In this document: positions 19,466-39,002 of the stretch, in pieces
How positions within the stretch are numbered: the stretch's first letter is position 1
Layout of the letters: the number at the start of each line of letters is the position of its first letter
Notes under the pieces: model-generated
Database searches by the model: none
What the model saw: only the letters and a program-made list of their open reading frames with translations
What the model was told of the DNA's origin: nothing
Position numbers and translations under genes: made by a program
Sequence record: OR670491.1
DNA: 64,000 bases
Direction: 5' to 3' (one strand)

Positions 19466-19579
19466 AAACTATTTTAAAAGTATTTGTAGAAAGTACTTGC
19501 ACAGTACTGATAAAAGCGTATAATGTTTTACATCGAGAGCGGGAACTCTTCCCGCTACACTTTAAGAGAGATTAATACG

Positions 19580-19942
19580 ATGGCGACTCAAATCACTAAA
19601 ATCATTGCTAACCTGGTTAACTTCCGCGACGATATGAAAGATCTTCCGGCGGCAACGGTTAAAACTCACATTGACGCATACCGCGAACTGATTAAAATGC
19701 TGCCGCTTAAGCGTGAACAATACGCCGCCACCGTGATGCTTGATGCGATGATCCATAAGATGATCGCCAGTGATTTAACGATGGCTTATCAGTATATGGG
19801 TGAATTGTTCGCGGTGTATAGTAAACCAGTACCAGGAATGGAAAGTACAGAAGTATTACACGGTTTAAATTTAAAACAAGATGCATGGGATAATATGCCT
19901 CGTTTCCTGGTATGGGCTGACAGTGGCAAAATTTACGAATAA
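19580..19942 (+). CDS. hypothetical protein
   Basis: ATG 19580 behind promoter/stem-loop cassette. Confidence 0.75.
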   Translation: MATQITKIIANLVNFRDDMKDLPAATVKTHIDAYRELIKMLPLKREQYAATVMLDAMIHKMIASDLTMAYQYMGELFAVYSKPVPGMESTEVLHGLNLKQDAWDNMPRFLVWADSGKIYE

Positions 19943-20034
19943 GTTAAAAATTAGTTTGACAGTACTGAATAAAAGCGTATAATGTTTTACATCAGGTGGG
20001 GAATAGTTCCCCACTATATAAGAGGATTAAAAAA

Positions 20035-20274
20035 ATGGCTAAATCAAAAATGTTCTTAGGTCACAAAAATAAAACTCATTGGAATGTAAGCCTTTGGATT
20101 AATAACGATGAGGGATTGTATCGGTTGGCCCAGGACTTTATTAACGATAGCACTAATCGCAATGATGCGGCCCGTCATATGATGTTATTTTTAGAACAGA
20201 CTGGACAAGATAAAACACCGGACGGATTCAAATATAGCACTACTGCGATCCGTGCGGCAATGGTAGGAATGTAA
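20035..20274 (+). CDS. hypothetical protein, paralog of 22076..22315
   Basis: GHKNKTHWNVSLWINN ... TPDGFKYSTTAIRAAMVGM shared. Confidence 0.8.
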   Translation: MAKSKMFLGHKNKTHWNVSLWINNDEGLYRLAQDFINDSTNRNDAARHMMLFLEQTGQDKTPDGFKYSTTAIRAAMVGM

Positions 20275-20360
20275 TAGAATATATTTAAAGTACTATCATT
20301 TTTTTGCGATAGTACTTTATAATAGTGTTTTATTCATACACCAACGATAAGGGCAACAGC

Positions 20361-20627
20361 ATGAATATTAAGTATTTTGCGACGCGTGAACAAGCTCGGA
20401 TCGCCGCTCGCCAGGACGGGGCAACGTTTAAAGATATGGGCGTACAATCGGAACGTGGTAAACGTTGGGCCATTGTAAAGCGTAGTACCGCCAGATCATT
20501 ACAGTACTGGTTAGCGGCCTTAAAAAGTCCCGATAGTGTATCGCGTCGAGTGGTAGAAATAAAGCTCGACCGAAAGGGCAACCGCGTGACCGTGTACCGT
20601 ACTAAAAAGATAGCAGTACTTGAATAA
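20361..20627 (+). CDS. hypothetical protein, paralog of 32821..33225
   Basis: FATREQAR...FKDMG...GKRWA...DRKGNRVTVY shared. Confidence 0.8.
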   Translation: MNIKYFATREQARIAARQDGATFKDMGVQSERGKRWAIVKRSTARSLQYWLAALKSPDSVSRRVVEIKLDRKGNRVTVYRTKKIAVLE

Positions 20628-20714
20628 AAAGTACTTGCAAACTATGTTTAATGGCGTATAATGTTTTACATCGAGAGCGGGAACTCTTCCCGCCTATAAC
20701 CTGGAGTAATAAAA

Positions 20715-20945
20715 ATGACTAATATGTATATGACTGAAGTTAAAACCGTAAAAGATACTACCACGAATAAAACTACTTACTTACAGCGGATCTGCGGTGT
20801 ATGGCAACGTATCAGCAAATCAAAGTACTTTAAATTAACATCATATGCAAATCGTTCGGATTCATTCAGTACTGAAATAAAAGGTAATAAAGTACACCAA
20901 TACGGCACTTATTATTATTACAGCCTGGACGCGATTGCAGTATAA
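20715..20945 (+). CDS. hypothetical protein
   Basis: own promoter cassette, GGAG RBS. Confidence 0.7.
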   Translation: MTNMYMTEVKTVKDTTTNKTTYLQRICGVWQRISKSKYFKLTSYANRSDSFSTEIKGNKVHQYGTYYYYSLDAIAV

Positions 20946-20975
20946 GCAGTTTACAAATCTTTACAATTGCCGGTA

Positions 20976-21056
20976 TTGACTTATTTTGTCAGTACTGGCA
21001 TAATGTATTCATTGGCAGATAAGCCGTAGCCCATAGGGTGCGGGAGTGTATCTATA
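20976..21056 (+). ncRNA. orphan promoter + CCCA-GGGTGC element (candidate short ncRNA or operator)
   Basis: TTGACT-17-CATAAT then TAGCCCATAGGGTGCGGGAGTGTATCTAT; no ORF. Confidence 0.4.
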
Positions 21057-21071
21057 GAAAAATTAGTTTAG

Positions 21072-21148
21072 TATAGTTACAATTGTGCACCCGGTGGGTT
21101 AGCTGTTGTCATGGGGTATATTATGCCAGTACTTGATAATTCTGTCAA
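21072..21148 (-). ncRNA. orphan leftward promoter + CCCA-GGGTGC element
   Basis: minus strand TTGACA-17-CATAAT then CTAACCCACCGGGTGCACAATTGTAACTAT; converges on previous unit. Confidence 0.4.
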
Positions 21149-21230
21149 TACTTTTTTTTTACTATTCAGTACTGAAAACTATTTTTAAAAAGTACTTGCA
21201 AACTATGTTTAAAGGCGTATAATGTTTTAC

Positions 21231-21305
21231 ATCAGGACGGGGAACGAAATAAGTAACTTCCCGTTAAGTAGCCCAGGAGTAAGGCACACGAAAAACTCCC
21301 CTGAT
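21231..21305 (+). ncRNA. candidate structured small RNA / leader, copy 1
   Basis: follows TTGCAA-16-TATAAT; ATCAGG/CCTGAT closing stem, ACGGG/CCCGT stem, GGAGT/ACTCC stem with 14-nt loop. Confidence 0.55.
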
Positions 21306-21373
21306 AAAATAGTTTGACAAATGTTTTTAAAAGCGTATAATACTTACATCAACTACTGAATGAGGGTTACAAA

Positions 21374-21985
21374 ATGAAAACTATCACTACTACTACTTTC
21401 GTTATGGATTTTTCTGAATTGAACGCAGAACAACAAACGTCAGCTATCGAACTGGTTCGGGATCGTGAGCGTTCATGTGAGGATAATTTCTTTGCTGAGG
21501 GCGTTATCGAGTACTATAAAGAAACAGTACTACCAGAATACGGCATAGATGAAGCTGAATTGCAATACAGTGGTTTTTGGTCGCAAGGTGACGGTGCATC
21601 AATCAGTACTGACAGCGTGGACGCAGTGAAGTTTTTACGCAAGATTAAAGCGTTAACGAAATATCGTTCTATCCGTCACTTGTTGAATGAAGATGATTTG
21701 GCAATGAGTGTAGAACGTTCACACTCTCGCTACGCACACGAAAACACGGTAAGCGGGTACATTGAATCGGCTTACACTGATTTAACCGCAAAACAAGAAA
21801 CGTTAGTTAATGAGCTTGAGGAACTACTCACTGATACTATTCGTGAATTGTCCCGCAAGTTGTACCGTGATTTAGAGAATGCATATGAGGATCAATTCAC
21901 TACTGAAAACATTACGGCACTGATTGAGGGTAACGAATATCAATTCAATGTTATTGATGGCGTAGTGGAATCAATCGAATATTAA
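21374..21985 (+). CDS. conserved hypothetical protein (YSGFWSQGDGAS motif)
   Basis: 203 aa acidic ORF, own promoter and GAGG RBS. Confidence 0.8.
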   Translation: MKTITTTTFVMDFSELNAEQQTSAIELVRDRERSCEDNFFAEGVIEYYKETVLPEYGIDEAELQYSGFWSQGDGASISTDSVDAVKFLRKIKALTKYRSIRHLLNEDDLAMSVERSHSRYAHENTVSGYIESAYTDLTAKQETLVNELEELLTDTIRELSRKLYRDLENAYEDQFTTENITALIEGNEYQFNVIDGVVESIEY

Positions 21986-22075
21986 TTTAAAAAGTACTTG
22001 CAAACTAAGTTTAAAAGCGTATAATACTTTATATCGAGGCGGGGAGTGGTTCCCCGCTCAAACGAGGATTTAAAA

Positions 22076-22315
22076 ATGGCTAGTACTAAAACTTACAACG
22101 GACACAAAAACAAAACTCATTGGAATGTAAGCCTTTGGATTAATAACGGTGAGTCATTGTATCGGCTTGCTCAAAGTTGCATCGCACAAAGTAGAACTAA
22201 AGATATTGCTGCGGAATGTATGTACCGCAGATTAAAAGCCAACGGTACTACTACAACGCCGGACGGCTTTAAGTATAGCACTACTGCGATCCGTGCTGCA
22301 ATGGTTGGAATGTAA
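22076..22315 (+). CDS. hypothetical protein, paralog of 20035..20274
   Basis: shared N- and C-terminal blocks. Confidence 0.8.
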   Translation: MASTKTYNGHKNKTHWNVSLWINNGESLYRLAQSCIAQSRTKDIAAECMYRRLKANGTTTTPDGFKYSTTAIRAAMVGM

Positions 22316-22372
22316 TATTCAGTACTGAGATAATGGCGGGTAATAGTTCCCGCCTTTACTGAGGGTTATCTA

Positions 22373-22633
22373 ATGAGTAAAGTAATTAGCTATACAGCAC
22401 TAAGCAAGACATTATCTATTAGCCAGTGCACCGATGGTTATTGGCTATTTGATGAAACGCGTGGCATGAATTTAGCGATGCGTGCAAAAACTGCTGAGGC
22501 GGCGTATATTCAAGCACTGGAATACTACCAGGAACGTTTAAAGGAAGTAGAAGAAGATTATAAAAGCCTCAAAGCGAAAGTAGATCATTTCGTCGGTCAA
22601 TTCAACGAGGAAGACGACGACAAACAATATTGA
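22373..22633 (+). CDS. hypothetical protein
   Basis: stem-loop + GAGG RBS; C-terminal coiled coil. Confidence 0.75.
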   Translation: MSKVISYTALSKTLSISQCTDGYWLFDETRGMNLAMRAKTAEAAYIQALEYYQERLKEVEEDYKSLKAKVDHFVGQFNEEDDDKQY

Positions 22634-22719
22634 AAAAGTACTTGCAATTAGTTTTCAGTACTGTATAATGGTTTACATCAAAGGGAGAAATGGTTCTCCC
22701 TGGTAATGAGGAAAATAAA

Positions 22720-22941
22720 ATGGCTAATATCACTACTCTTTCCCAACTGGAAGCACTGGTGAAATCTATGCGGGAACATGCCGACAAAATCGGCGTACAA
22801 GATCCAGCCGTTTGCTTCTGCGACGAATTGAATGATGATACCCTGGTAATAGCAGAAGTCCAGGACGTTTCTAACTATTCCTCGCGTTACACTGGCGGCG
22901 TAGCAAATAAAGGCGACTTCTGTTTATACCTTACAAAATAA
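22720..22941 (+). CDS. hypothetical protein
   Basis: ATG 22720 behind cassette. Confidence 0.7.
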   Translation: MANITTLSQLEALVKSMREHADKIGVQDPAVCFCDELNDDTLVIAEVQDVSNYSSRYTGGVANKGDFCLYLTK

Positions 22942-22994
22942 CAACGCGGGGAGATAATAACTCCCCGTTACTTTTTCAGTACTGAATCATTTAA

Positions 22995-23076
22995 TAGACG
23001 GATCTCGGCACCCGGTGGGTTAGTGACTGTTTCGTCTTGATGTAGTAATTATGCCAGTACTGGATGCACTTGTCAA
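22995..23076 (-). ncRNA. orphan leftward promoter + CCCA-GGGTGC element
   Basis: minus strand TTGACA-17-CATAAT...CTAACCCACCGGGTGCC. Confidence 0.4.
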
Positions 23077-23184
23077 CAACTATTTTTCAAATACTTTTTA
23101 TTAAAATACTTGCAATTAGTTTTTAAACGCGTATAATGTTTTGCATAGGGGGAGCGGTTCCCCTGGTAACTAAGGAATAATAAA

Positions 23185-23421
23185 ATGCTTGAACAAATCA
23201 AATCAACGTCTGCGAATGTAACGGGAACGGTATCACACTTTACTAGTGATGAATCGCGTGGTGTTCCTTATTGTGCTGTACATGTAAACACTGATGGCAA
23301 CTACTGGTTTACGGTTTACGGATCATATTCATTTGGACGGCCAGGGCATCAAAAAATTCTGGATAAAGTACAACCAACGGGTAAAAATATCACTGCCGAA
23401 ATGTTTTATAAAAAATCATAA
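23185..23421 (+). CDS. hypothetical protein
   Basis: own cassette, AAGGA RBS. Confidence 0.75.
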   Translation: MLEQIKSTSANVTGTVSHFTSDESRGVPYCAVHVNTDGNYWFTVYGSYSFGRPGHQKILDKVQPTGKNITAEMFYKKS

Positions 23422-23505
23422 AGTACTTGCAATTAGTTTTTAGTACTGTATAATATTTTACATCGCAAGGGGAAACGGTTTCCCCTGGTAACTAAGGATA
23501 ATCAA

Positions 23506-23805
23506 ATGAAAGTTGCAATCATCGCCCTGGCTTTATCTGTATCGTCTTTCGCTGTTAACGCTTCCGTTGATGTACCGCGTGAAAAATTCATTCAGTGCAC
23601 TGTTGCAATGACTAACGAGGAAACGGCTGAGATTGTTACCAAATCCCTGGAACTGGCCCCTGCAATGTTTGCTAATGGCCCGTACCATGAAGAAGATGAT
23701 CAGGGTAGCACGACCATCTATTACGATGCAAAAAGTAAACGCGGTTCAGTTACTGTAATGGATACTGAGAAAGTTACATTCACGGGAGTAATTAATTGTT
23801 TTTAA
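23506..23805 (+). CDS. putative exported protein
   Basis: Sec-type signal peptide MKVAIIALALSVSSFAVNA. Confidence 0.75.
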   Translation: MKVAIIALALSVSSFAVNASVDVPREKFIQCTVAMTNEETAEIVTKSLELAPAMFANGPYHEEDDQGSTTIYYDAKSKRGSVTVMDTEKVTFTGVINCF

Positions 23806-23821
23806 TGAAGTACTGAATCAT

Positions 23822-23851
23822 AAGCCCACTATAAGAAGTGGGCTTTTTTTA
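23822..23851 (+). terminator. intrinsic terminator
   Basis: AAGCCCACT-6-AGTGGGCTT + T tract. Confidence 0.85.
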
Positions 23852-23927
23852 TTGTAGTACTGAATACTTTAAAAATAGTTTTGAAATAGTAGTTGACATT
23901 ACCAGGGAAAGGCGTAGAATGTATTAC

Positions 23928-23990
23928 ATCAGGACGGGGAACACTAAGTAGACCGCCAGTAAGTCGAACGAAAAACTGGACACGACCTGG
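23928..23990 (+). ncRNA. candidate structured RNA / leader, copy 3 (divergent)
   Basis: ATCAGGACGGGGAAC start; CCAGT/ACTGG stem with the same 14-nt AAG-N4-ACGAAAA loop. Confidence 0.5.
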
Positions 23991-24035
23991 AAACTTTGAT
24001 AAACTAACTTACACTTTAATTGAGGAATTAAAAAA

Positions 24036-24515
24036 ATGGCAAATGTAAAATCATTCTTTAAAGCACTGGTATCTTCTGACGTATCTATCGCCGCTGAATT
24101 GCTGGCTGACCTGGATAATGATACCATGAAAGCAGTACGCAATAATTTTAATATGGCGTACAGTGCAGCAAAAGAACTGCAAGCCAAAAAGGTAGCAGAA
24201 CTGGAAGCGGCAAAGGCAGAACGTGAAGCAGAACTGCAAGCAACAATCGAAAGCATCCAGGCGGCGGTAAGTGGATTGGATATCGAGATCGTAACCGATA
24301 TGGCACATAAAGCCCTAGCTGCAAAATACGGTGAAGTAAAAGCGGTTAAAGAAAAGAAATGGATTCAGGACCGCGTTAACGTAGTACTTGACAACGGGGA
24401 AGAATATCTTATTCCTGTACGCGGTAACTGCATTGCCGTAGTACTGGACGCGATTAACTCCAGTGGTATGACACGCGAGGAATGGATCGAAGCTCATCGC
24501 AAAGTTGAAGCATAA
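24036..24515 (+). CDS. H-NS-like protein with degenerate DNA-binding motif
   Basis: central coiled coil; C-term NGEEYLIPVRGNCIAVVLDAINSSGMTREEWI aligns without gaps to the H-NS DNA-binding domain as I recall it. Confidence 0.55.
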   Translation: MANVKSFFKALVSSDVSIAAELLADLDNDTMKAVRNNFNMAYSAAKELQAKKVAELEAAKAEREAELQATIESIQAAVSGLDIEIVTDMAHKALAAKYGEVKAVKEKKWIQDRVNVVLDNGEEYLIPVRGNCIAVVLDAINSSGMTREEWIEAHRKVEA

Positions 24516-24536
24516 CAATAAAAGTACTGAATCACT

Positions 24537-24563
24537 AGCCCACCTTAAACGGTGGGCTTTTTT
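24537..24563 (+). terminator. intrinsic terminator
   Basis: AGCCCACC-6-GGTGGGCT + T tract. Confidence 0.85.
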
Positions 24564-24790
24564 GTGTTTATCGTTTACCAGGCCACCAGCACCGCCTAGA
24601 AACGATTCTAACGCATTAAACTGATTATCTGATGCATTGCCCTAGCTGGTGGCGTTAAGGCTGTAAGAACGCGATTGAGAGCGTTTAAAGTATTTTGCAA
24701 AAAGTAATAAAAAGTACTTGCACGATTAAGAGATTAGCGTATAATTAATTACATCAAGGCAAGACACCTTAACTAACTGAGGATATAAAG

Positions 24791-24943
24791 ATGAATACTT
24801 ATGACCTGGATTGTTTTACTTTACAAGTAATGTCAGTATGCAGTAAGAAAGATTGGTCATCAAAGGAATTTAAAGCAGTTATCGCGTGTGCAAAACACGG
24901 CAAGACTATCAATGAAACGGCATCAATCATTGATAAACTTTAA
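24791..24943 (+). CDS. hypothetical protein (50 aa)
   Basis: own promoter, GAGG RBS; C-term resembles 28686..28829. Confidence 0.55.
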   Translation: MNTYDLDCFTLQVMSVCSKKDWSSKEFKAVIACAKHGKTINETASIIDKL

Positions 24944-25012
24944 AAAATAGTTTGACAATAGTTTTAAGTACTGGCATAATACATACATCAACTACTGAAT
25001 AGGAATTAAAAA

Positions 25013-25240
25013 ATGGCTATTATCATTACTCGCGTATCTGGTACTACTGGCAACGAACAAGTAGTTGCAGTCATTACCAACAAGGAAGGTGCGGAATTGC
25101 AAAATGCAATGAATACCTGGGCCGTTAATGAGTTCGGTCAGTGGGCAAGTGTAGCATACATTGAAACCTATCAAGTGCCGTCGATTAGTTTAACTGATTT
25201 GGGCGTTGAGCGTATCCTTTGCCTGGATGAATTAAATTAA
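25013..25240 (+). CDS. hypothetical protein
   Basis: own promoter and RBS. Confidence 0.75.
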   Translation: MAIIITRVSGTTGNEQVVAVITNKEGAELQNAMNTWAVNEFGQWASVAYIETYQVPSISLTDLGVERILCLDELN

Positions 25241-25325
25241 AAAAGTACTTGCAAAGTAAATCGAATAAAGTATAATACATTACATCAAGGGGAGAAATGG
25301 TTCTCCCCACTACAAGGAAACTAAA

Positions 25326-25469
25326 ATGAAAACTTGTCAATGTGGTCATAAATCTATTACGGGTTTTAAGCGGGGCGTTGCTCTTTGCCAGTACCATTAT
25401 AATTTACAAGTATGGGGTAAAGAATGGGCCGACCAGGTGGAAGCAGCAAAGAAAGCAAAAAGTAAGTAA
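25326..25469 (+). CDS. small Cys/His-rich protein (47 aa)
   Basis: MKTCQCG...LCQYH; behind cassette. Confidence 0.6.
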   Translation: MKTCQCGHKSITGFKRGVALCQYHYNLQVWGKEWADQVEAAKKAKSK

Positions 25470-25557
25470 AATATTATCACAGTACTATTGACATAGTTTG
25501 ATAGTACTGGCATAATAGATTTTATCAAGACAACATATTAATTTAAGGAATACAAAA

Positions 25558-25881
25558 ATGGCTAAAACTATCATTAACACCGTTTCCCTGGCTGCAATCC
25601 GTGCAATCAATGTTGACGGTAAACGTTGGACTGATACATATGGCAATACTTATCATTCTTGTCATGTAAGCGTTGAACTGGATAACGGTTTGAATGATCT
25701 GGCGGTTGAATCATTTACTTATGGCTATGAAGATGCATATCAACAAACGGCGTTAGATCTATTAAAGGAATCAGTAGACGGGCTTAATACTGATGAAACC
25801 TCCCTTACTCGTTTGTGCAATGATCTTAATATCCCGTTGCATTGTACTGTACAGAATGTTAAACGCAAAAAAGATCTTTAA
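25558..25881 (+). CDS. hypothetical protein, paralog of 32407..32730
   Basis: RWTDxxGNTYHSC...TYGY...VKRKKD shared. Confidence 0.8.
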   Translation: MAKTIINTVSLAAIRAINVDGKRWTDTYGNTYHSCHVSVELDNGLNDLAVESFTYGYEDAYQQTALDLLKESVDGLNTDETSLTRLCNDLNIPLHCTVQNVKRKKDL

Positions 25882-25961
25882 TTAGCTTTACTTTATGCAG
25901 ATACTTTGATATAGTGTCTGCATAGGGGAAAGAAATTAAATTAACTTAAGAGGATCGTATA

Positions 25962-26231
25962 ATGAAAAATATCAGTACTTTAATCGATACAGGTACTCAT
26001 GTTCGTCGGTCTATGGTTGCAACCAGTACTACAAAACAAGTACCAAGCGGTTATCTTGTATTTGTGCACGATGGTAAACTCCTGGAACGTTCAATCAATT
26101 TTGATGTTAAAAACAATTGCCGTTTTATTATCTTTAAGCGTGAGCAATATAAAATTGATTTACCAGCAAAGCCCATAAGCGGGGCGTACAACGTGCAATC
26201 ATTGTTTGAACGTCAACCATACACCTATTAA
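25962..26231 (+). CDS. hypothetical protein
   Basis: GAGG RBS. Confidence 0.7.
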   Translation: MKNISTLIDTGTHVRRSMVATSTTKQVPSGYLVFVHDGKLLERSINFDVKNNCRFIIFKREQYKIDLPAKPISGAYNVQSLFERQPYTY

Positions 26232-26282
26232 TCAAAACATCGTTAGCGGTCGATTTAGGCCGCGTATATTGGGGATTATACC

Positions 26283-26555
26283 ATGAACGTTAATCAAGTA
26301 CTGAATGAGATCGAAAGCATCATTAAACCAATGAAACGCATTGATGCTATGTTAACACCGGAAGAATGCCGCCTTTATGAGCGTTACAGCGTCGAACAAG
26401 TCCAGGCAATGGCTATGGCTACCCCAGCCGTTAAACCGCCTGAGAATGCGTTACAGGACGTTACAGGGGATTATATCATCAATCCAGTACTAGGGAAGAT
26501 GGCTGCAATCACCGAAGATCAACAAGATTACTTAAGTCAGTACTTAAAAGGTTAA
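26283..26555 (+). CDS. hypothetical protein
   Basis: ORF in + strand run. Confidence 0.65.
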   Translation: MNVNQVLNEIESIIKPMKRIDAMLTPEECRLYERYSVEQVQAMAMATPAVKPPENALQDVTGDYIINPVLGKMAAITEDQQDYLSQYLKG

Positions 26556-26560
26556 TTAAT

Positions 26561-26770
26561 ATGCTTACTGTACAGGATAAGATCGACATCTTAAAGGTTA
26601 ATATGTATGTGATTGATGCAGTACCTGGTAAAGTATTTGCATACGATGACAGTACTGTAAGCGATTTCTACTATAGCCAGGACGTGGGGGATCTTTCTGT
26701 ACAGTCGGTTATTGAAAACGTAGTTAATGCAGCGTATGAGCATTTACTTTCAAATAGTACTTGCAATTAG
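26561..26770 (+). CDS. hypothetical protein
   Basis: ORF in + strand run. Confidence 0.65.
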   Translation: MLTVQDKIDILKVNMYVIDAVPGKVFAYDDSTVSDFYYSQDVGDLSVQSVIENVVNAAYEHLLSNSTCN

Positions 26771-26839
26771 TTTTTAAACGCGTATAATGTTTTACATGAA
26801 GGGGAGAAATGATTCTCCCCACTAATTAAGGAATATGAA

Positions 26840-26986
26840 ATGAAAGCATCAAAAAAGAGTAATACTAAGAAAGCACGTTCAACCTTAGATGGGGTATTCC
26901 CTTTACGTTTCGTTGATGAAGTGGTGTCCTACCCGCCGGGCCTTACTCCTGAGATGGTAGAAAGTTTGCGTAAATCTAAAAAATAG
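26840..26986 (+). CDS. small basic protein (48 aa)
   Basis: behind cassette; translated by hand. Confidence 0.5.
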   Translation: MKASKKSNTKKARSTLDGVFPLRFVDEVVSYPPGLTPEMVESLRKSKK

Positions 26987-27067
26987 TACTTGCAATTAGT
27001 TTTTAGTACTGTATAATAGTTTACATGAAGGGGAGAAATGATTCTCCCCAATAACAGGAGAATCAAA

Positions 27068-27220
27068 ATGAAACAATACAACGCTCGGTTTGATGTTACT
27101 ATCGGTAACGGCAAAGGTCAATTCTCTTTCAGTACTCGCAAAAGTTATACAGAAAACTTCCTGCGTAATTGTGCACTGACCGCCGCTCAAATTAAACATT
27201 ACTTTCAGGCTAAAAAATGA
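27068..27220 (+). CDS. hypothetical protein (50 aa)
   Basis: ATG 27068 behind cassette with GGAG. Confidence 0.6.
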   Translation: MKQYNARFDVTIGNGKGQFSFSTRKSYTENFLRNCALTAAQIKHYFQAKK

Positions 27221-27306
27221 AAACATTAGCTTACTATAGTTCGGCCCTGGTCGGTGCATTGATCGCGGCGTTGTTAGTAACCTATCTATTCTTTATGGTG
27301 ATTTAA

Positions 27307-27450: not shown

Positions 27451-27451
27451 A

Positions 27452-30406: not shown

Positions 30407-30433
30407 TATTAATTTAATAGAGGATAACAATAA

Positions 30434-31053: not shown

Positions 31054-31139
31054 AAAGTACTTGCACAGTACTGAATAAAGTGTATAATGTTTTATATCGG
31101 AAGGGGAATAGTTCCCCTCCGAACAAAGAGGAAAGTATA

Positions 31140-31313: not shown

Positions 31314-31459
31314 AAGAATTCTTATTTGAAGTAGTGTTTCAAGGTGTCGGTAATAACCAACTGATTCGATCAAGTGGTTATAATGTTAACCAGGCATGGA
31401 ATAACATTAAACAAATGTACCCGAACGCTATCACATATCGCAACCCGAAAGAAGTTTAA
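31310..31459 (+). CDS. hypothetical protein (49 aa)
   Basis: ATGA overlap, GAGG RBS; translated by hand. Confidence 0.55.
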   Translation: MKEFLFEVVFQGVGNNQLIRSSGYNVNQAWNNIKQMYPNAITYRNPKEV

Positions 31460-31470
31460 AAATAATTGAA

Positions 31471-31554
31471 AAAGGGATTGACTCCGGTCAGTCCCTTTGT
31501 TATTATATACGCATAGAAACAAATTAGCCCACCGGGTGCATAAATGTATCTATT
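31471..31554 (+). ncRNA. hairpin-embedded orphan promoter + CCCA-GGGTGC element
   Basis: TTGACT-17-TATTAT; TTAGCCCACCGGGTGCATAAATGTATCTAT. Confidence 0.4.
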
Positions 31555-31631
31555 GTTTGCTGGTGGCTAGTACTGAAAACTATTTTTAAAAAGTACTTGC
31601 ATTGTACTTAGAATCAAGTATAATGTTTTAC

Positions 31632-31704
31632 ATCAGGACGGGGAACGAAATAAGTAACCCCGTTAAGTAGTCCAGGAGTAAGACATACGAAAAACTCCCC
31701 TGAT
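31632..31704 (+). ncRNA. candidate structured small RNA / leader, copy 2
   Basis: closely similar to 21231-21305 with all three stems retained. Confidence 0.55.
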
Positions 31705-31773
31705 AAAATAGTTTGACAATAGAAAGTAAACGAGTATAATACTTACATCAACCACTGATAAGGAAACATAAAA

Positions 31774-32049
31774 ATGCGGATTCTACTGACAGCTAACGAA
31801 ATCGAACAAGTACTGACTACTAATCTGGAACAATGGAAACGTGAAGCAGATATCCAGGCGGTTCAATGCCTTAACGATAAGTTAACGCCAGATGACTTAA
31901 GCACGATTGTTGATCCACAATTTTATGAAGATATTCACGACACGTCTTTAAGCGTCGAGGATGTACTTGATAAGCACTACATTGATACTGATTTACATGT
32001 TTACGGTCGTAAAAACTTTATCACTATTCACGACATTTACAATACTTAA
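31774..32049 (+). CDS. acidic hypothetical protein
   Basis: own promoter and RBS. Confidence 0.75.
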   Translation: MRILLTANEIEQVLTTNLEQWKREADIQAVQCLNDKLTPDDLSTIVDPQFYEDIHDTSLSVEDVLDKHYIDTDLHVYGRKNFITIHDIYNT

Positions 32050-32135
32050 GTATTGACAAAGTATCTTAGTACTGTATAATAGTTTACATCAAGGGGGGGA
32101 ATGGTTCCCCTCCTAACTAAAAGAGAGAAATAAAA

Positions 32136-32318
32136 ATGGCTAAGTGCACTATCTGTAATAAAGAAATAGTATTAGTTCCAAGTGCCCGTGAACGTGCCGC
32201 TCGGTTCGGTGGCAAAGCGTCAGACTATACAAAAATGTTTACTACCCATACAGCTTGCCAGGTAGCAAAACGTTCACAAGAAAGCGTAGAATTAATGCGT
32301 AAACTTTCCAAAAAATAA
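32136..32318 (+). CDS. small putative metal-binding protein
   Basis: CxxC ... HxxC. Confidence 0.7.
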   Translation: MAKCTICNKEIVLVPSARERAARFGGKASDYTKMFTTHTACQVAKRSQESVELMRKLSKK

Positions 32319-32406
32319 GTATTGACAAAGTATCTTAGTACTGTATAATAGTTTACATCAAGGGGGGGGGAATGGTTCCCCTCCTAACAAAGAGAGAGAA
32401 ATAAAA

Positions 32407-32730
32407 ATGGCTATGATCCTTACCCAGAAAGTAGAACTGAAAATTGTAACCTCCTTTGACATTAAAGTTAATCGGTGGACTGATAGCCACGGCAATACTT
32501 ACCACTCCTGCTACGTGTCCGCATTGATTGGTGATCGCTGGGAAGACCTGGGACACGAAACCTTTACATACGGTTACGGCACACAAGGCGAGTACACGGG
32601 TTTAGAAATCATTAAGGAAACTGTAATAGGTTTCAACCCGAAAGAGAAAGTACTACACAGAATTGAGAAAGAGATCAACAAAGAAATTACAGTTCGCTAC
32701 TACGATGTAAAACGTAAGAAAGACATGTAA
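32407..32730 (+). CDS. hypothetical protein, paralog of 25558..25881
   Basis: shared motifs; upstream cassette almost identical to that of 32136. Confidence 0.8.
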   Translation: MAMILTQKVELKIVTSFDIKVNRWTDSHGNTYHSCYVSALIGDRWEDLGHETFTYGYGTQGEYTGLEIIKETVIGFNPKEKVLHRIEKEINKEITVRYYDVKRKKDM

Positions 32731-32820
32731 TAGAATCCATTTAAAGTACTATTTGACATTGCCCAGATAGTACTTTATAATAGACTCTAACTTGTAGTAC
32801 TAATTAACTTAACTAATAGG

Positions 32821-33225
32821 ATGTACACCATGATTACTAAATTCTTCGCTACCCGTGAACAAGCTCGCATCGTTGCCCGTGAGGAAGGTGAAACATTTAA
32901 AGACATGGGTAAAGATTCTCCTACTGGTAAACGCTGGGCGGTACAGTTCAAAGAGATCTCTGATATTGTGAATTCACCTGAGCCTGTACTTACAGCAGCA
33001 GAACTAAAGCAAGCTCAAGAACTGGCTGAAGTACTGAACGCTCAAGATGACTTCTTGAAAGGTTCTGATATTGAAGTTACAGTTAACGCAAATGCATGGA
33101 CTCACGCGGATCACCTGGCAAACCTTAAGCGTCCAAGTGAACTGATTCGTAACCAGAAAGAGATCCGTCATGACCGTAAAGGAAACCGTGTTACCGTATA
33201 CAGTAAACGCCGCCAGGTTATCTAA
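32821..33225 (+). CDS. hypothetical protein, paralog of 20361..20627
   Basis: shared motifs with a longer central insert. Confidence 0.8.
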   Translation: MYTMITKFFATREQARIVAREEGETFKDMGKDSPTGKRWAVQFKEISDIVNSPEPVLTAAELKQAQELAEVLNAQDDFLKGSDIEVTVNANAWTHADHLANLKRPSELIRNQKEIRHDRKGNRVTVYSKRRQVI

Positions 33226-33289
33226 TACCTTGCAGTACTAACCAACACGGCGGGAAGACAGTTCCCGCCTTTTTTATAGGACAAACAAA

Positions 33290-33544
33290 ATGATTAAGGT
33301 TCAACTATATAAAGATAACATCTTACGGGTACACTATAAAGCACCTCAGAGAATCATCACAAAGGCCGTACAGCTTGCTAATGAGTTTATTAATGGTAAC
33401 CTATTACCTAGGAAGTTAAGCAACGGGAAACTGCGTGTAATCGACGTGGACACTAACAACAGGATAGTAATCGAGAACACAGGAAAGATAAACCTTTATG
33501 AGCATCAACAATACAATAAGAAAATAAAACTAATATCACGTTGA
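33290..33544 (+). CDS. hypothetical protein, possibly ParE/RelE-like fold
   Basis: RKL...VIDV...RIV...EHQQYN pattern; weak. Confidence 0.55.
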   Translation: MIKVQLYKDNILRVHYKAPQRIITKAVQLANEFINGNLLPRKLSNGKLRVIDVDTNNRIVIENTGKINLYEHQQYNKKIKLISR

Positions 33545-33597
33545 CAGTACTCAATTGTTTTAGTACTATGTACACATACCAACACGGGAGAAACAAA

Positions 33598-33816
33598 ATG
33601 AAATTATCTAAAATCGAAAAGAAAACTATTGATGAAGCAGTTAAGCACGGTTATACCTTTCGTAATGATTCACATTTTACCAATTTTCAACAAGGGTATC
33701 GTACTATTAAAAAACTAATTGACAAAGGTTTATTAGTTGAAGTCAATAACGGTAACGGTATCGAGTATCAACCAACACAGGACGCATTTTATTTTAAGAA
33801 ATATAATATTATCTAA
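33598..33816 (+). CDS. hypothetical protein, possible winged helix
   Basis: TIKKLIDKGLLVEV; own promoter. Confidence 0.6.
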   Translation: MKLSKIEKKTIDEAVKHGYTFRNDSHFTNFQQGYRTIKKLIDKGLLVEVNNGNGIEYQPTQDAFYFKKYNII

Positions 33817-33874
33817 TTGACAGTACTCAAATGTTTTAGTACTATATGTACATACCAACACGGGGGGAAACAAA

Positions 33875-34117
33875 ATGATTACTTTAGAAAAACGTATCAA
33901 AGAAACTACATCGCTGGTGGAACTGTTAACAGTACTCAAATGTAAAACAGCACCATTCAGCACGCCGGACTTTATTAATATGGTTGATGTTAATGGTCGC
34001 TATCGTATCACGGTCGAACAAGGAGCGGCGAAAGTATTCAGTACTAAAAACACGAAGGAAGTGATCCACGCCGTTAATGTTAAAAAAGTAGTTGCCATTG
34101 ATAGTAAAGTACTGTAA
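33875..34117 (+). CDS. hypothetical protein
   Basis: promoter cassette duplicated from 33541. Confidence 0.7.
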   Translation: MITLEKRIKETTSLVELLTVLKCKTAPFSTPDFINMVDVNGRYRITVEQGAAKVFSTKNTKEVIHAVNVKKVVAIDSKVL

Positions 34118-34148
34118 TATAGTTTCATTAACTCAAGGAGATCATGCA

Positions 34149-34733
34149 ATGCGTAATTATACAAAATTCATCCGTACACTGTCAGAAATGGAAACCAACA
34201 AAGAGATCCTTTCAGCTTGTCGGTTAGCTGACCTGGAGATCATCGGTGCTGGTTCTTCCCGTATAGTTTTCGCTTTAAATGATCGGTTAGTGATTAAGGT
34301 CGCGAATTGTGATGCGGGTGTAGAACAAAATGAAACTGAATGTAAGGTATGGAATTTTTTAGACTATGACCGCCCTCAGTTGAAACAGTACTTTGCAAAG
34401 GTGCATATGCATTTATGCGATCCTGATAATATGTTTATCGTTATGGATCGGTTGAGTACTGCAAGCAAAGGCAGTGTGAAGCACGTAAACGCGTGCAATG
34501 AATTAAAGTACAATATTAAACGTAATGCAATCGAACGCCAGCACCGCTTTGCTGATGCACTACAACACGTTGATGATACATTATCAACACTAACGATAAG
34601 AGATATCAGAAAACAGAATATCGGCCAGGATCGTAATGGACTTATTAAAGTACTTGATTACGGTTTAACCAGCAATATCTGGAATCAGTACTATAAAAAG
34701 CGTGATGTGGCAGCAAGTAAGGTAACACGATAA
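34149..34733 (+). CDS. protein kinase-like (Ser/Thr kinase fold) protein
   Basis: Gly loop IGAGSSRIV, VIK lysine, QNETE helix C, catalytic RDIRKQNIG, LDYG; AAGGAG RBS before ATG 34149. Confidence 0.85.
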   Translation: MRNYTKFIRTLSEMETNKEILSACRLADLEIIGAGSSRIVFALNDRLVIKVANCDAGVEQNETECKVWNFLDYDRPQLKQYFAKVHMHLCDPDNMFIVMDRLSTASKGSVKHVNACNELKYNIKRNAIERQHRFADALQHVDDTLSTLTIRDIRKQNIGQDRNGLIKVLDYGLTSNIWNQYYKKRDVAASKVTR

Positions 34734-34745
34734 AAAAGATTAAAA

Positions 34746-34834
34746 AAAGGGATTGACTCCGGTCAGTCCCTTTGCTATTATATATCCATTGAGAGATAAC
34801 TCACTGACCCATAGGGTGCGGAAGTGTATCTATT
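34746..34834 (+). ncRNA. hairpin-embedded orphan promoter + CCCA-GGGTGC element
   Basis: TTGACT-17-TATTAT; CTGACCCATAGGGTGCGGAAGTGTATCTAT. Confidence 0.4.
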
Positions 34835-34955
34835 ATATAAGTATTCAGTACTGAAAACTATTTTTAAAAAAGTACTTGCATTGTACTTAGAATCAAGTAT
34901 AATGTTTTATATCGAGAGGGGGAAATGGTTCTCCCTGGCAATAAGGAATAAAATC

Positions 34956-35177
34956 ATGACTACAATGACTTGCATTTACGCTTCCAATCGTCTGAATGAT
35001 GCGGCCTTTAATGTTGATTCAGAATATCAATGTTATCGGGATGAAAATAAAAAAGTTTTTGTAGTTGATAATAATGGTTTCCATATTGAATTACAATCCG
35101 GCTTCACTGGTGTTGATGGTAAATCAGTATGGGGCGTACAGGATGATAAAGGCACATATCATTTTAAACGTAATTAA
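34956..35177 (+). CDS. hypothetical protein
   Basis: ATG 34956 behind cassette. Confidence 0.7.
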   Translation: MTTMTCIYASNRLNDAAFNVDSEYQCYRDENKKVFVVDNNGFHIELQSGFTGVDGKSVWGVQDDKGTYHFKRN

Positions 35178-35260
35178 GTATTGACAAAGTATATCAGTAC
35201 TGTATAATAGTTTACATCAAGGGGAGAATAGTTCTCCCCGATACTAAAAGGAATAAAATC

Positions 35261-35665
35261 ATGACTACTACTAATCTTGCTCGGAATATCGCCAACGATA
35301 AAAATCATGCTGCAATGGTTGTTGGTTACATTGAAGCTATGCAATTCAGTACTGTACACAATGAGAACGGCGATTACCTGGAAGATTATGAATTATCAGA
35401 GCAAGCCCATCAAGCGGCAGTGATTGCATGTTCTCGCTTCATTGAGAAACACGGTAATGATCTGGAAGTAGTTCGCGGTATGTTTATTGATTACGGTTAT
35501 GAGCAAGCTGGTCATGATCTGTTCCTTACCCGCGAAGGTCACGGAACTGGTTTTTGGGATCGTGGTTTAGGTCACTATGGCGATGTATTCACGAAGTACT
35601 GCGAAGAAATCAACGTTTGCGATCCCTATGTAGGCGATGATAATCTAATCTATATGGGCGAATAA
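35261..35665 (+). CDS. conserved hypothetical phage protein (GHDxxLTRxGHGxGFWDR)
   Basis: own cassette; His/Gly-rich motif. Confidence 0.8.
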   Translation: MTTTNLARNIANDKNHAAMVVGYIEAMQFSTVHNENGDYLEDYELSEQAHQAAVIACSRFIEKHGNDLEVVRGMFIDYGYEQAGHDLFLTREGHGTGFWDRGLGHYGDVFTKYCEEINVCDPYVGDDNLIYMGE

Positions 35666-35752
35666 AAGTATTTGACAAAGTATATCAGTACTGTATAATA
35701 GTTTACATCAAGGGGAGAATAGTTCTCCCCGATACTAAAAGGAAACAAAATT

Positions 35753-36025
35753 ATGTCCAGCTACTCCGCTACTATGATCATTAAAGATATGAACGGTAAT
35801 CCTACTTCTGCTGGTGGATCATTTGGAAACATTAATTTAGATGGTCGGTTATCCATGCAATCAGCAATCGATGCAGCGAAAGAAGTTTTTAAGAATGAAT
35901 GTACTGTTAGTAAGCTGGATTATATGGGATTTGCTATCGAAAAAACTAATCGTTTTGTGGACTACAAAAAACCACTGATGATTGATACTAACCTGAAAGC
36001 AAACGAAGTGGAGTACTTATTATGA
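35753..36025 (+). CDS. hypothetical protein
   Basis: cassette almost identical to that of 35261. Confidence 0.75.
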   Translation: MSSYSATMIIKDMNGNPTSAGGSFGNINLDGRLSMQSAIDAAKEVFKNECTVSKLDYMGFAIEKTNRFVDYKKPLMIDTNLKANEVEYLL

Positions 36026-36213
36026 CAGTTGAAGAAGTTAAAAAAGTACTGGCAGTACTACGCTATCATAATCATTGTAAGGTGAAGAATGATCCTGATT
36101 ATCTTGATTCATCCCTGGAAGAGGATACACTACAAGCAATAAGCCATATGCAAACATTAGCAAAGCGTATGACCGAAAAGAATAGACCGGACTATATCGG
36201 AAATAAAATTTAA
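36022..36213 (+). CDS. hypothetical protein
   Basis: overlapping start, GGAG RBS. Confidence 0.6.
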   Translation: MTVEEVKKVLAVLRYHNHCKVKNDPDYLDSSLEEDTLQAISHMQTLAKRMTEKNRPDYIGNKI

Positions 36214-36299
36214 AAAGTACTTGCATTGTAGTTAGATTAACGTATAATGTTTTACATAGAGCGGGGGAATAGTTCTCCCGCCAGTCCAGGAGATACACC

Positions 36300-36563
36300 A
36301 TGAACACTATCGAAATCACTATCAATGCACACGTATACGACAACGTAATCATGCAAACTACTATGACCGCTAATGATACCAGTACTTTGCGGAATACTGT
36401 TATTAGTGCTGTATGTGCCGCTATCGGTGATGTCGCCCTGGAAAATGCAAAACACGTAAACGATGGTTTCACTATGTGCAAACGTGATAACGCAAAACAT
36501 ATCATCGTGGAAGGTTACGGCGGTGTAGAATTTAATGTTTATATGAAAAAAGTACTTGCATAA
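36300..36563 (+). CDS. hypothetical protein
   Basis: own cassette. Confidence 0.75.
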   Translation: MNTIEITINAHVYDNVIMQTTMTANDTSTLRNTVISAVCAAIGDVALENAKHVNDGFTMCKRDNAKHIIVEGYGGVEFNVYMKKVLA

Positions 36564-36630
36564 TAACTAAAACAAAGTATAATGTTTTGCATAGGGGGAG
36601 ATATCCTCCCCCACTAAAAGGAGTAATAAA

Positions 36631-36855
36631 ATGGCTAACTTTGATGAACTGATGCGGGAAGTAGCTAACCTGGCAGAAGAGAAGAAATCATTCGATTCTA
36701 TCTATAACACCGCTCACCGTGATTCAGTACTGGCATGTAACCAGGATCAAAAAGATGAACTAATCGCCACCTATCATGAAGCATGGAAGTACTACCGACA
36801 ATGGGAGAAAGAAGAAAGTGAGTCTACCATTGACGGCCTCAATAATCTAATCTAA
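36631..36855 (+). CDS. acidic helical hypothetical protein
   Basis: own cassette. Confidence 0.75.
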   Translation: MANFDELMREVANLAEEKKSFDSIYNTAHRDSVLACNQDQKDELIATYHEAWKYYRQWEKEESESTIDGLNNLI

Positions 36856-36931
36856 AAGTTTTATTTCAGTACTATTGACATAGCTTGATAGTACTGATGT
36901 AATAACTTTACTAACTACAAGGGGAAACATA

Positions 36932-37189
36932 ATGGATCAGTTCACACAATATCGGGTAAATCATCAAGCTATGGCCTACGTAGAAGACCATAAAACGTTA
37001 CCAGTACTGCAACCAGTTAAAGGCCATATCTATCGTGCAATGTCGTGGTGTACGGCCCAGGATGGCTATAAAACCGTAGCCGTTGGTATGTATTGCGGTA
37101 ATGGTGAATGGTTTGATCCAAATAATCCGGTAGCCATTGACAGTACTGAAAAAATGAAATGGGCCGACTACATCGAAGATATTTCATAA
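36932..37189 (+). CDS. hypothetical protein
   Basis: own promoter. Confidence 0.7.
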   Translation: MDQFTQYRVNHQAMAYVEDHKTLPVLQPVKGHIYRAMSWCTAQDGYKTVAVGMYCGNGEWFDPNNPVAIDSTEKMKWADYIEDIS

Positions 37190-37278
37190 AAACTATTTGA
37201 CAGTACTAACCAGTAATGTATAATGTTTTACATAGAGCGGGGAATAGTTCTCCCGCCAATAGTTTGGAGTAAAACATT

Positions 37279-37479
37279 ATGTCTATCGCTATCGCCCTGG
37301 TTGAAGTACTGAAAGAAGCTAAAGCCAACCAGATCGACGTAAAGATCCAGGAACTACAAAACGGCTTAATCGGCTGTACTTGTACCGCTGGTGGAGCGGC
37401 AGACTATCGAGAACACGAATCACTCGAATCACTGGTTCGGTATCTTACCATGATCGTTGATGATTGGAGAATCATCTAA
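37279..37479 (+). CDS. hypothetical protein
   Basis: own cassette. Confidence 0.7.
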   Translation: MSIAIALVEVLKEAKANQIDVKIQELQNGLIGCTCTAGGAADYREHESLESLVRYLTMIVDDWRII

Positions 37480-37495
37480 CAAAAAAAGAATAAAA

Positions 37496-37576
37496 AAAGG
37501 GATTGACTCCGGTCAGTCCCTTTGCTATTATATACGCATAGACAAAAACTAGCCCACAGGGTGCATAGGTGTATCC
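37496..37576 (+). ncRNA. hairpin-embedded orphan promoter + CCCA-GGGTGC element
   Basis: TTGACT-17-TATTAT; CTAGCCCACAGGGTGCATAGGTGTATCC. Confidence 0.4.
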
Positions 37577-37725
37577 AAAATATATAGTTAATAACGGTGA
37601 GTAACTATCTGCTGGTGGAACTAAAACTATTAATAAAAAAGTATTGACAAAGTATATCAGTACTGCAATAATGTATCTCGTAGGGCGGCAATGGTGCGAC
37701 GGCCCACAAAGTTAGGAGATTCAAA

Positions 37726-38058
37726 ATGACTACTTCAATCGCTATCGTTAAAGCTTTCATCCGTACTAATGTTTCCTCTGTATTCATCGACGGCCTCGAC
37801 CGTAACGTAGAATACTCAATCATTATCGCACAAACGGCAAACGGTTCTCGGTACATCCTGAATGATAGTGAAGCAAATCACTACTACTTCACTAAAGCCA
37901 CTGGCTTTAAACGCATCGATGCTGATGTAGTATACGCTAAGATGAATAAGCTGGTAGACAAGATTAACGCTAAAGGTACTATAGATTTACAGTACTGGAC
38001 CGAAACCGATCCAGAATATGGATCTCACCGCTACCTGAATCCAGGTATCAAAATGTAA
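37726..38058 (+). CDS. hypothetical protein
   Basis: own promoter, AGGAG RBS. Confidence 0.75.
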   Translation: MTTSIAIVKAFIRTNVSSVFIDGLDRNVEYSIIIAQTANGSRYILNDSEANHYYFTKATGFKRIDADVVYAKMNKLVDKINAKGTIDLQYWTETDPEYGSHRYLNPGIKM

Positions 38059-38147
38059 AAAGTACTTGCATAGTACTTAGATTCATGTATAATGTTTTAC
38101 ATAGAGAGGGGGAAATGGTTCTCCCTCCTAAATTAAGGAGTATTGTC

Positions 38148-38549
38148 ATGACTTTTTCTATCAATTCTTATGCTGACGTTTTAGTACTGGCTCGGACTTT
38201 TGGTAAAGATGCACTGGAGTACGCTGTAAGTAATGGCACTATCCAACCGGAACAGTGCCGCATCATTGGAAACTGCAAACGTTGGGCGGTTTCCAATACT
38301 ATTGCACTGGAAAACTTCCACGATGGCAACAATGAATATTCTGTTGATGTAGTATTCGAAGCCGTTGATCTCGGCGGTATCTATAATACTAACCTGAATG
38401 ATGTGCGTATCGTTCGCACTGGGTTCGGTGCTTATGATGTATCTATTCGTGAAGCTATGAACACCGGATACATTAGCAAGGACTTACTTGCTCACATCAT
38501 GCAGCTGTGTACGGAACGTAACGAAGCACGCACTATCTTAGGACTGTAA
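38148..38549 (+). CDS. hypothetical protein
   Basis: ATG 38148 behind cassette. Confidence 0.75.
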   Translation: MTFSINSYADVLVLARTFGKDALEYAVSNGTIQPEQCRIIGNCKRWAVSNTIALENFHDGNNEYSVDVVFEAVDLGGIYNTNLNDVRIVRTGFGAYDVSIREAMNTGYISKDLLAHIMQLCTERNEARTILGL

Positions 38550-38573
38550 GCGTTACACATCACCAAACATCAT

Positions 38574-38595
38574 AGGCCGCCTTGTAGCGGCCTTA
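38574..38595 (+). terminator. possible terminator
   Basis: AGGCCGC-6-GCGGCCT, short T tract. Confidence 0.5.
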
Positions 38596-38617
38596 ACTAT
38601 ATCAGGAGTACATACAC

Positions 38618-38827
38618 ATGATCTATACAGTATACAGCGTTCTAGGCACTATTGCAGGCGTACATGATAACGTCGATAGTGCTATGCGTACAGTACTGCA
38701 ACAGGTTCCACTAAAGCCTAAGACCATTAAGCAGATGACAGCACGACTAACCAGGGCGACGGCTGGCGTGGAAGTATGGCAGGACTATGGGGATACACAG
38801 ATAATCGTAAGCGTAACGAAGGATTAA
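38618..38827 (+). CDS. hypothetical protein
   Basis: AGGAG RBS. Confidence 0.65.
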   Translation: MIYTVYSVLGTIAGVHDNVDSAMRTVLQQVPLKPKTIKQMTARLTRATAGVEVWQDYGDTQIIVSVTKD

Positions 38828-39002
38828 TGCGTAAAAGGATTTAGTACTGATGCATTTTAAATTTTAGTCATTTTTTAAAAACTACGCAAAAAAACTAAAC
38901 CAATACCTTAGCGTAATAGTTTAGGGATTGGACTATGTTTTTATGCGTGGGGGGGCTAGTATGGGGTAACCTTAGCTCGATCGTGAAGTAGCCCATAGGG
39001 TA

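Follow-up and report, generated by a model that had tools for sequence, protein, structure and literature searches.

The 64,000-nt stretch of DNA analysed here (in the following, the window) corresponds with 100% identity to positions 291,584-355,583 of sequence record OR670491.1, the genome of Escherichia phage vB_EcoM_JNE01 (JNE01), which belongs to the genus Asteriusvirus within the 121Q/PBECO4 group of jumbo coliphages. The best overall explanation for a distinct block of this window, and in our judgement a probable one, is that it constitutes the direct terminal repeat (DTR) of an Asteriusvirus jumbo phage with immediate-early host-takeover content. In particular, it is strongly supported that window positions 17,757-38,972 are the single assembled copy of this repeat, and that the true genome ends lie at record positions 309,340 and 330,555. 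A DTR with the same ends has been published previously for this genus, and the presence of early genes in such repeats is likewise a known idea; new here are the placement of the ends in the JNE01 record and the descriptions of an array of promoters and cassettes and of an island of distinct codon usage. The repeat and the elements at its two ends are the following:

17,757-38,972, no strand assigned: direct terminal repeat, single copy, 21,216 bp (record 309,340-330,555), placed by the termini of relatives and by contig depth.
17,757-17,890, + strand: conserved left-terminal segment, with a 6-bp GC-rich hairpin (17,761-17,777) immediately after the first repeat base.
38,852-38,972, + strand: right-terminal segment, in which short conserved islands reach the terminus at 38,972.
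39,003-39,030, + strand: promoter beyond the right terminus, 31 nt outside the repeat and kept in the related phages fEgEco12, G17 and vB_Ec-M-J.

In a junction alignment, the repeat starts and ends of fEgEco12, G17 and vB_Ec-M-J all align to window positions 17,757 and 38,972, respectively, and it is because of this agreement that the repeat is placed between these two positions. The termini are thus defined and conserved, three independently mapped repeats having identical start and end positions, and at the left terminus the first 60 nt of fEgEco12 and vB_Ec-M-J are identical to the window at 58 of 60 positions. The two record-end copies are 100% identical in vB_Ec-M-J (21,525 bp), where the annotation gives 'Direct Terminal Repeats' at 1-21,525, as well as in G17 (20,668 bp). 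The DTR of fEgEco12 comprises 20,993 bp as determined by PhageTerm and confirmed by restriction digests (PMC13070987), the repeat of G17 of about 20 kb was detected via coverage (PMC6563267), and for Sharanji a DTR of 20,668 bp was obtained with PhageTerm (PMC11895373). According to a table of related phages, the mapped repeats all have a size of about 20 kb except for the 8.3 kb given for UE-S1, which was judged by the authors to be mis-assigned (PMC13070987).

Across nearly the whole repeat, fEgEco12 and JNE01 share 91-97% identity. Conservation rises sharply at about position 17,740 in an alignment of three phages, and high-identity homology to nearly all relatives is abruptly lost at 38,850-38,854, both termini being short conserved islands in otherwise divergent DNA. 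Also the surroundings of the promoter at 39,003-39,030 have diverged among fEgEco12, G17 and vB_Ec-M-J, whereas the promoter itself is conserved. It leads a tightly packed run of overlapping small genes without promoters of their own, and in the virion genome this operon would follow the left copy of the repeat. A sequence-only reading of the window had proposed a terminal repeat of about 20 kb between 19,490 and 38,950 with two non-coding edges. The repeat as such is borne out by its end-for-end homology to the DTRs of three close relatives together with an about 2.1-fold contig depth, and both edges are non-coding as stated; with respect to the coordinates, the right edge was correct to within 22 bp, whereas the left edge has to be moved outwards by 1.7 kb, to 17,757, so as to include a gene-free stretch.

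The same reading had suggested a doubling of read depth as a check, and a corresponding step is present in contig data. Assembled contigs (Logan) of the sequencing run X1, in which 98% of the sampled words occur and which is the probable source of the assembly, were placed on window positions 36,000-41,999, that is, on the right boundary only. The k-mer depths of the exact-match contigs inside the repeat are 5174, 5382, 5086 and 5400 and thus agree within 6%, and with an inside mean of 5261 and a depth of 2515 for the next contig outside the ratio is 2.09. No mismatch or branch occurs where the contig at 38,576-40,297 spans the boundary; its depth is 3279, compared to the 3148 predicted for a twofold step at 38,972, and loose contig ends are found only at the repeated promoter modules. 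This depth step backs the DTR in JNE01 as support, not as proof.

In the same interval, contigs on the repeat side are also deeper in two wastewater metatranscriptome libraries, X15 (11-42 versus 2-7) and X16 (2.6-16 versus 4.6-6.5). Since this difference could reflect expression, carry-over of twofold DNA or better recruitment of relatives on the conserved side, it was given no weight.

As deposited, the JNE01 record contains one internal copy of the repeat and no repeat annotation. It is a collapsed assembly that was opened arbitrarily, as is the case for many other records from Asteriusvirus (about 348-356 kb), and the true genome ends are therefore internal to the record. The packaged linear genome of JNE01 would be about 376.8 kb in size with the DTR at both ends. 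By analogy with T7, T5 and SPO1, one repeat copy would be present per concatemer junction, and the terminase would cut at the two conserved terminal sequences, the repeat being duplicated during packaging.

With respect to gene content, the repeat is occupied for most of its length by a single array:

19,497-38,827, + strand: gene array, comprising 54 small genes with a median product size of 79 aa and about 45 promoters of the sigma-70 type.

Perfect promoters (12/12 matches to TTGACA-N16/17-TATAAT) are found 13 times on the + strand between 19,001 and 39,000, in contrast to one in each of the flanks of 19-20 kb and to about 0.013 per strand expected from base composition. One further perfect site at 18,125 brings the number in the 21.2-kb block to 14. 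For genome-wide counts the record was reassembled from its loci (355,583 bp); in these 355.6 kb there are 41 perfect sites on the + and one on the - strand, with 0 for a reversed-pattern control, so that the block holds 14 of the 42 perfect sites of the genome in 6% of its length. Also with a lower threshold of at least 9/12 matches, 101 sites between 19,001 and 39,000 compare to 68.1 +/- 6.7 in shuffles of the block, and the flanks are depleted of such sites (62 and 65 versus about 92 in shuffles). The promoters share the orientation of the genes: of those with at least 11/12 matches, 20 in the repeat are on the + and five on the - strand (19:3 in the gene array alone), as compared to 119 and seven, respectively, in the entire genome, where about 86% of the open reading frames (ORFs) are on the + strand. 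If the frequent -35 variant TTGCAA/TTGCAY is counted, 37 of the 54 annotated genes of the block, or about 70%, have a recognisable promoter of their own; most genes thus conform to the earlier claim that nearly every gene has one, which was too broad in this respect.

In addition, the block is the only island in the genome with a codon usage resembling that of Escherichia coli. Inside versus outside the block, CTG accounts for 27% versus 9%, GGC for 26% versus 7%, CCG for 30% versus 9%, ATA for 9% versus 33%, and AGA and AGG together for 15% versus 55% (p = 7.5e-25). The relative synonymous codon usage of the block correlates with that of a sample of E. coli genes at +0.50, in contrast to -0.24 to -0.02 for the flanks. 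When 10-kb bins of the genome are compared to the codon preference of a sample of E. coli genes, the two bins lying wholly within the block reach 0.45 and 0.40 and all others at most 0.28, the bins on either side of the block being the minimum of the genome (-0.13 to -0.21). The G + C content is 0.38-0.40 in the block versus 0.33-0.36 outside; the cumulative GC skew tracks the coding strand and is uninformative on ends or origins. The shift towards enterobacterial codons noticed in the sequence-only reading is hence strong and directed towards E. coli, and the block does differ sharply from its flanks in promoters, codon usage and G + C content. In the genes flanking the repeat (window 1-17,400 and 39,000-47,500; record 290-310 and 330-340 kb), AGA and AGG make up 53-66% of the arginine codons. 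Phage tRNA genes (Thr-UGU twice, Leu-UAA, Gly-UCC, Ser and Met) and a sigma-like gene lie outside the block at record 246-266 kb. All nine tRNA hits obtained with Rfam fall within three loci, and in these no tRNA-Arg was called by ARAGORN; one weak Rfam hit, at record 247,590-247,668, was left uncalled.

The left part of the repeat and the spaces between the genes harbour a number of recurrent elements:

17,757-19,490, no strand assigned: gene-free, repeat-dense leader of 1.7 kb with no credible gene.
18,125-18,152, inward-facing: perfect promoter, 368 bp from the left terminus.
About 18,580-18,660: 8-nt tandem array within the gene-free leader.
19,301-19,465: 66-nt tandem repeat within the gene-free leader.
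28,009-28,124, + strand: representative cassette of promoter, leader hairpin and ribosome-binding site; 24 such copies, located between 19,477 and 38,161, were aligned.
18,858-37,564, six on the + and three on the - strand: nine promoter-driven short non-coding units sharing the 12-nt core CCCAYMGGGTGC.

The gene-free leader, which also contains many copies of CAGTACTGA, probably carries recognition and other cis-acting sites. Downstream of it, alignment reveals a cassette of about 116 nt (mean column identity 64%) that is common to 24 genes and consists, in this order, of an A-rich upstream tract, the -35 element, a 16-nt spacer, TATAAT, a conserved ACAT start region, a G/C-rich hairpin of 8-10 bp, a Shine-Dalgarno sequence and the ATG. 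The stem shows compensatory GC/AU changes, and single-sequence folds of the leaders yield -11 to -17 kcal/mol; these folds are clearer than the result of RNAalifold on the MAFFT alignment of the cassettes, in which the hairpin was only partly recovered. The loop of the hairpin often reads AATGG, and because of this some genes have been called from an ATG within the hairpin by ORF callers as well as in the deposited annotation, as is the case for the annotated starts at 22,690 and 38,085. The true starts likely follow the Shine-Dalgarno sequence, e.g., at 22,716.

As for the non-coding units, each CCCAYMGGGTGC core has a promoter of its own about 50 nt upstream, and all nine are within the repeat. 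The core is present in nine copies versus 0.19 expected, and the remainder of the window contains none. The units could represent small RNAs or else binding sites for a protein, situated about 50 nt past the start site. A 12-bp hairpin encloses four of their + strand promoters (27,453, 31,471, 34,746 and 37,496). Neither in 17,000-39,500 nor in the whole window was a known RNA family or a tRNA found (Rfam with E up to 0.1; ARAGORN).

Among the proteins encoded in the block, five deserve individual description:

24,036-24,515, + strand: 159-aa protein (phrog_27871).
29,462-29,719, + strand: TraR/DksA-type C4 zinc-finger protein, 85 aa (PF01258, 36.9 bits versus a cut-off of 24.9; phrog_54).
29,783-30,139, + strand: GNAT acetyltransferase, 118 aa (PF00583, 37.2 bits versus a cut-off of 20.7).
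33,290-33,544, + strand: ParE-like toxin-domain protein, 84 aa (PF24732, 42.5 bits versus a cut-off of 24.4).
34,149-34,733, + strand: minimal protein-kinase-like protein, 194 aa (Pkinase, 17 bits and thus below the cut-off of 31.7).

Four functional assignments had been made from the sequence alone. The TraR-like protein, with its C4 finger, and the GNAT acetyltransferase both score above their Pfam cut-offs. The kinase assignment is weak: the Pkinase score is below the cut-off, whereas all 14 of the 14 weak PDB matches are kinases and the translation contains G-loop, VIK, D..N and DYG motifs. By contrast, the H-NS-like assignment of the 159-aa protein finds no sequence support in either Pfam or PDB. 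Above their Pfam cut-offs are also two DUF7249 proteins and one DUF7247 protein, and for 24 of the 30 block proteins scanned there was no Pfam family above the cut-off. The gene for the ParE-like protein is closely followed by an ORF of 72 aa (33,290-33,816 for both), and the two may form a toxin-partner pair or else represent an early gyrase-directed factor.

Taken together, the host-type promoters, the host-like codons, the small ORFans, the TraR/DksA, GNAT, kinase-like and ParE-like proteins and the early transcription of the DTR in phage PA5oct (see below) are the reasons for considering the block plausibly a pre-early or immediate-early module for host takeover. According to this model, the about 45 near-consensus sigma-70 promoters with their A-rich upstream tracts would allow transcription to be started immediately by unmodified host RNA polymerase (RNAP) without any phage factor, and leader hairpins and strong ribosome-binding sites would suit a high output. 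A codon usage resembling that of E. coli, with AGA, AGG and ATA being avoided, would permit translation at a time when neither tRNAs nor other factors of the phage are yet present; the avoided codons are those preferred elsewhere in the genome and poorly read in E. coli. Two copies of the repeat per genome would double the template dose. The TraR/DksA finger, the GNAT, kinase-like and ParE-like proteins and many of the ORFans would then plausibly act on the transcription, the proteins and the DNA of the host.

Comparison with other phages places this model in context. The DTRs of fEgEco12, G17/Sharanji and vB_Ec-M-J resemble that of JNE01 in that their termini are homologous to the nucleotide and in that the order of the genes, their + polarity and the genes for the TraR/DksA, GNAT and kinase-like proteins are shared; they differ in that the cassette content is mosaic between strains and that only one copy, internal and without annotation, is present in the JNE01 record. 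A search for promoters gave 0 word matches in the papers on fEgEco12 and Sharanji, in which the promoter array and the cassettes are not described. In Pectobacterium phage CBB, a Rak2-like jumbo phage with RpoD-like promoters and UP-like elements, the repeat was suggested by the authors to continue the early region (PMC5259590). Its size, given in the sequence-only reading as about 22 kb, is indeed 22,456 bp as found by doubled read depth and pulsed-field gel electrophoresis (PMC5259590). However, CBB belongs to a different genus, only three of its 18 predicted RpoD-like promoters are in the repeat as compared to about 45 in the repeat of JNE01, and no nucleotide homology was found between the CBB repeat and the JNE01 block. 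In Pseudomonas phage PA5oct, the DTR of about 39 kb comprises 105 genes, and a large number of these show high transcription early; transcription depends on the host RNAP and proceeds almost entirely from one strand, and non-coding RNAs are present in the DTR (PMC7318152). PA5oct is a related jumbo phage with another host and another sequence, and the timing was measured there by RNA-seq, whereas for JNE01 it is inferred.

Next to PA5oct, the closest precedent for early host takeover is SPO1, in which a host-takeover module lies within the terminal redundancy (PMC6873191). JNE01 resembles SPO1 and T5 in that its long terminal repeat contains clusters of small genes equipped with ribosome-binding sites and with strong promoters for the host RNAP, such genes being early ones in SPO1 and T5. 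In T5, the transfer of the terminal repeat in a first step is established. In T7, the strong host promoters A1-A3 point inwards from a few hundred bp off the leading end; the perfect promoter near the left terminus of JNE01 would correspond to them if this end leads. T7, however, is a 40-kb podovirus with a repeat of 160 bp. The cassettes in turn resemble the promoter-early stem-loop (PeSL) elements of T4-like phages, in which ORFans in hyperplastic regions are repeatedly preceded by a GGGG...CCCC stem-loop and by a strong promoter of the sigma-70-like kind that has an AT-rich tract upstream (PMC2839356, PMC4122927). The 24 cassettes of JNE01 likewise combine a sigma-70-like promoter, an AT-rich tract and an adjacent G/C stem-loop that are repeated in front of ORFans. 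However, they lack the terminator or attenuator feature of PeSL elements, as their hairpin lies downstream of the -10 element in the transcribed leader and has no T run; for this reason it is a 5' mRNA hairpin and not an upstream terminator. An order like that of PeSL elements is seen only in the four hairpin-embedded promoters.

Several points speak against the proposed combination of terminal repeat and early module or limit its reach. The record contains a single copy, so that the sameness of both ends is a prediction for JNE01. The contig depth is one k-mer mean per contig from one probable source run at the right boundary, a kind of value whose use as a depth measure is discouraged. In the literature searched, no time-resolved expression data or transcriptome of any Asteriusvirus was found. 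As a second, broad zone rich in strong sigma-70 promoters is found upstream of the right copy of the repeat, at record 230-290 kb, the repeat is the densest part of the genome read by host RNAP and not all of it. Finally, exchange of genes with other coliphages could account for part of the host-like codon usage. According to another reading, JNE01 would have no terminal repeat at all, the depth step being due to intragenomic repeats or a mixed lysate and the similarity of the termini to shared ancestry, and the deposited 355,583-bp record, single-copy and without an annotated repeat, as well as a depth that is a per-contig mean of one run would fit such a view. We consider it highly improbable, given that the boundary contig crosses without mismatch or branch while loose ends occur only at promoter modules, that the four inside contigs agree within 6%, that the terminal sequences are conserved islands in divergent DNA, and that the mapped repeats of relatives, apart from that of UE-S1, have about 20 kb according to the fEgEco12 table, with the termini of fEgEco12, G17 and vB_Ec-M-J at the same positions.

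More probable than this, though less so than the main reading, is that the block represents for the most part a hyperplastic accessory island, in which small ORFan cassettes have been swapped among large coliphages by recombination at the repeated promoter and hairpin modules and in which codons and G + C content reflect a foreign, shuffled origin and not early timing. This rather unlikely alternative could hold also if the block is the DTR, and it does not exclude the early module. In its favour, relatives cover 28-97% of the block in many pieces, which is suggestive of indels bounded by the cassettes, several genes have 78-88% nucleotide identity to unrelated coliphages of 130-150 kb (rV5-like, phi92-like and phAPEC8-like), and there is a resemblance between the cassettes and the PeSL elements, for which a role in such shuffling has been shown in T4-like phages (PMC2839356, PMC4122927). 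Because the block is mosaic, shares genes with other coliphages and carries PeSL-like cassettes, gene exchange may explain part of the codon signal. However, the codon shift is block-wide and begins and ends with the left and right ends of the repeat, and near-consensus, co-oriented promoters point to selection on expression and not to drift. The shared small genes are found at 19,956-20,170, 22,010-22,320, 28,090-28,320 and 36,020-36,215; they also match nine 'Campylobacter phage' records of about 143-146 kb (including A145, A135 and A147), the labels of which look doubtful. A further proposal, improbable in our view, holds that the repeat enters the cell first and that its co-oriented promoters pull in the genome by transcription, as in T7, and/or titrate the host RNAP. 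What argues for entry is geometry only, namely the perfect promoter that faces inwards at a distance of 368 bp to the left terminus and the strand bias of the promoters with at least 11/12 matches in the repeat (20 on the + versus five on the - strand); the closest strong - strand promoter is 4.8 kb from the right terminus, and therefore only entry with the left end first would fit. For titration it can be said that two copies of the repeat would amount to about 90 strong promoters per genome. However, T5 and SPO1 have early genes in their terminal repeats without using this mode of entry, contractile-tailed phages are not known to use it, and at an RNA chain growth of about 50 nt/s the internalisation of about 377 kb would require about two hours. 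Equally doubtful is an extended version in which the repeat would be a start-up device for the ~377-kb genome, with host RNAP, recruited by the consensus promoter near the left end and the about 45 co-oriented promoters behind it, assisting or gating the entry of the DNA from the left end while being soaked up, and in which the shared leader hairpin would define one post-transcriptional regulon with an off switch operated by a single phage or host factor.

The practical gain is a corrected record, in which the real ends are placed and the size of the virion genome is predicted, and the promoters and cassettes may possibly serve as strong and compact expression parts for E. coli. With respect to the biology of the phage, the host-like codon usage marks the genes of the block as being expressed under conditions unlike those of the rest of the genome, and the 54 genes, about 45 promoters, leader hairpin and nine non-coding units together make up a candidate host-takeover toolkit of a poorly understood group of jumbo phages.

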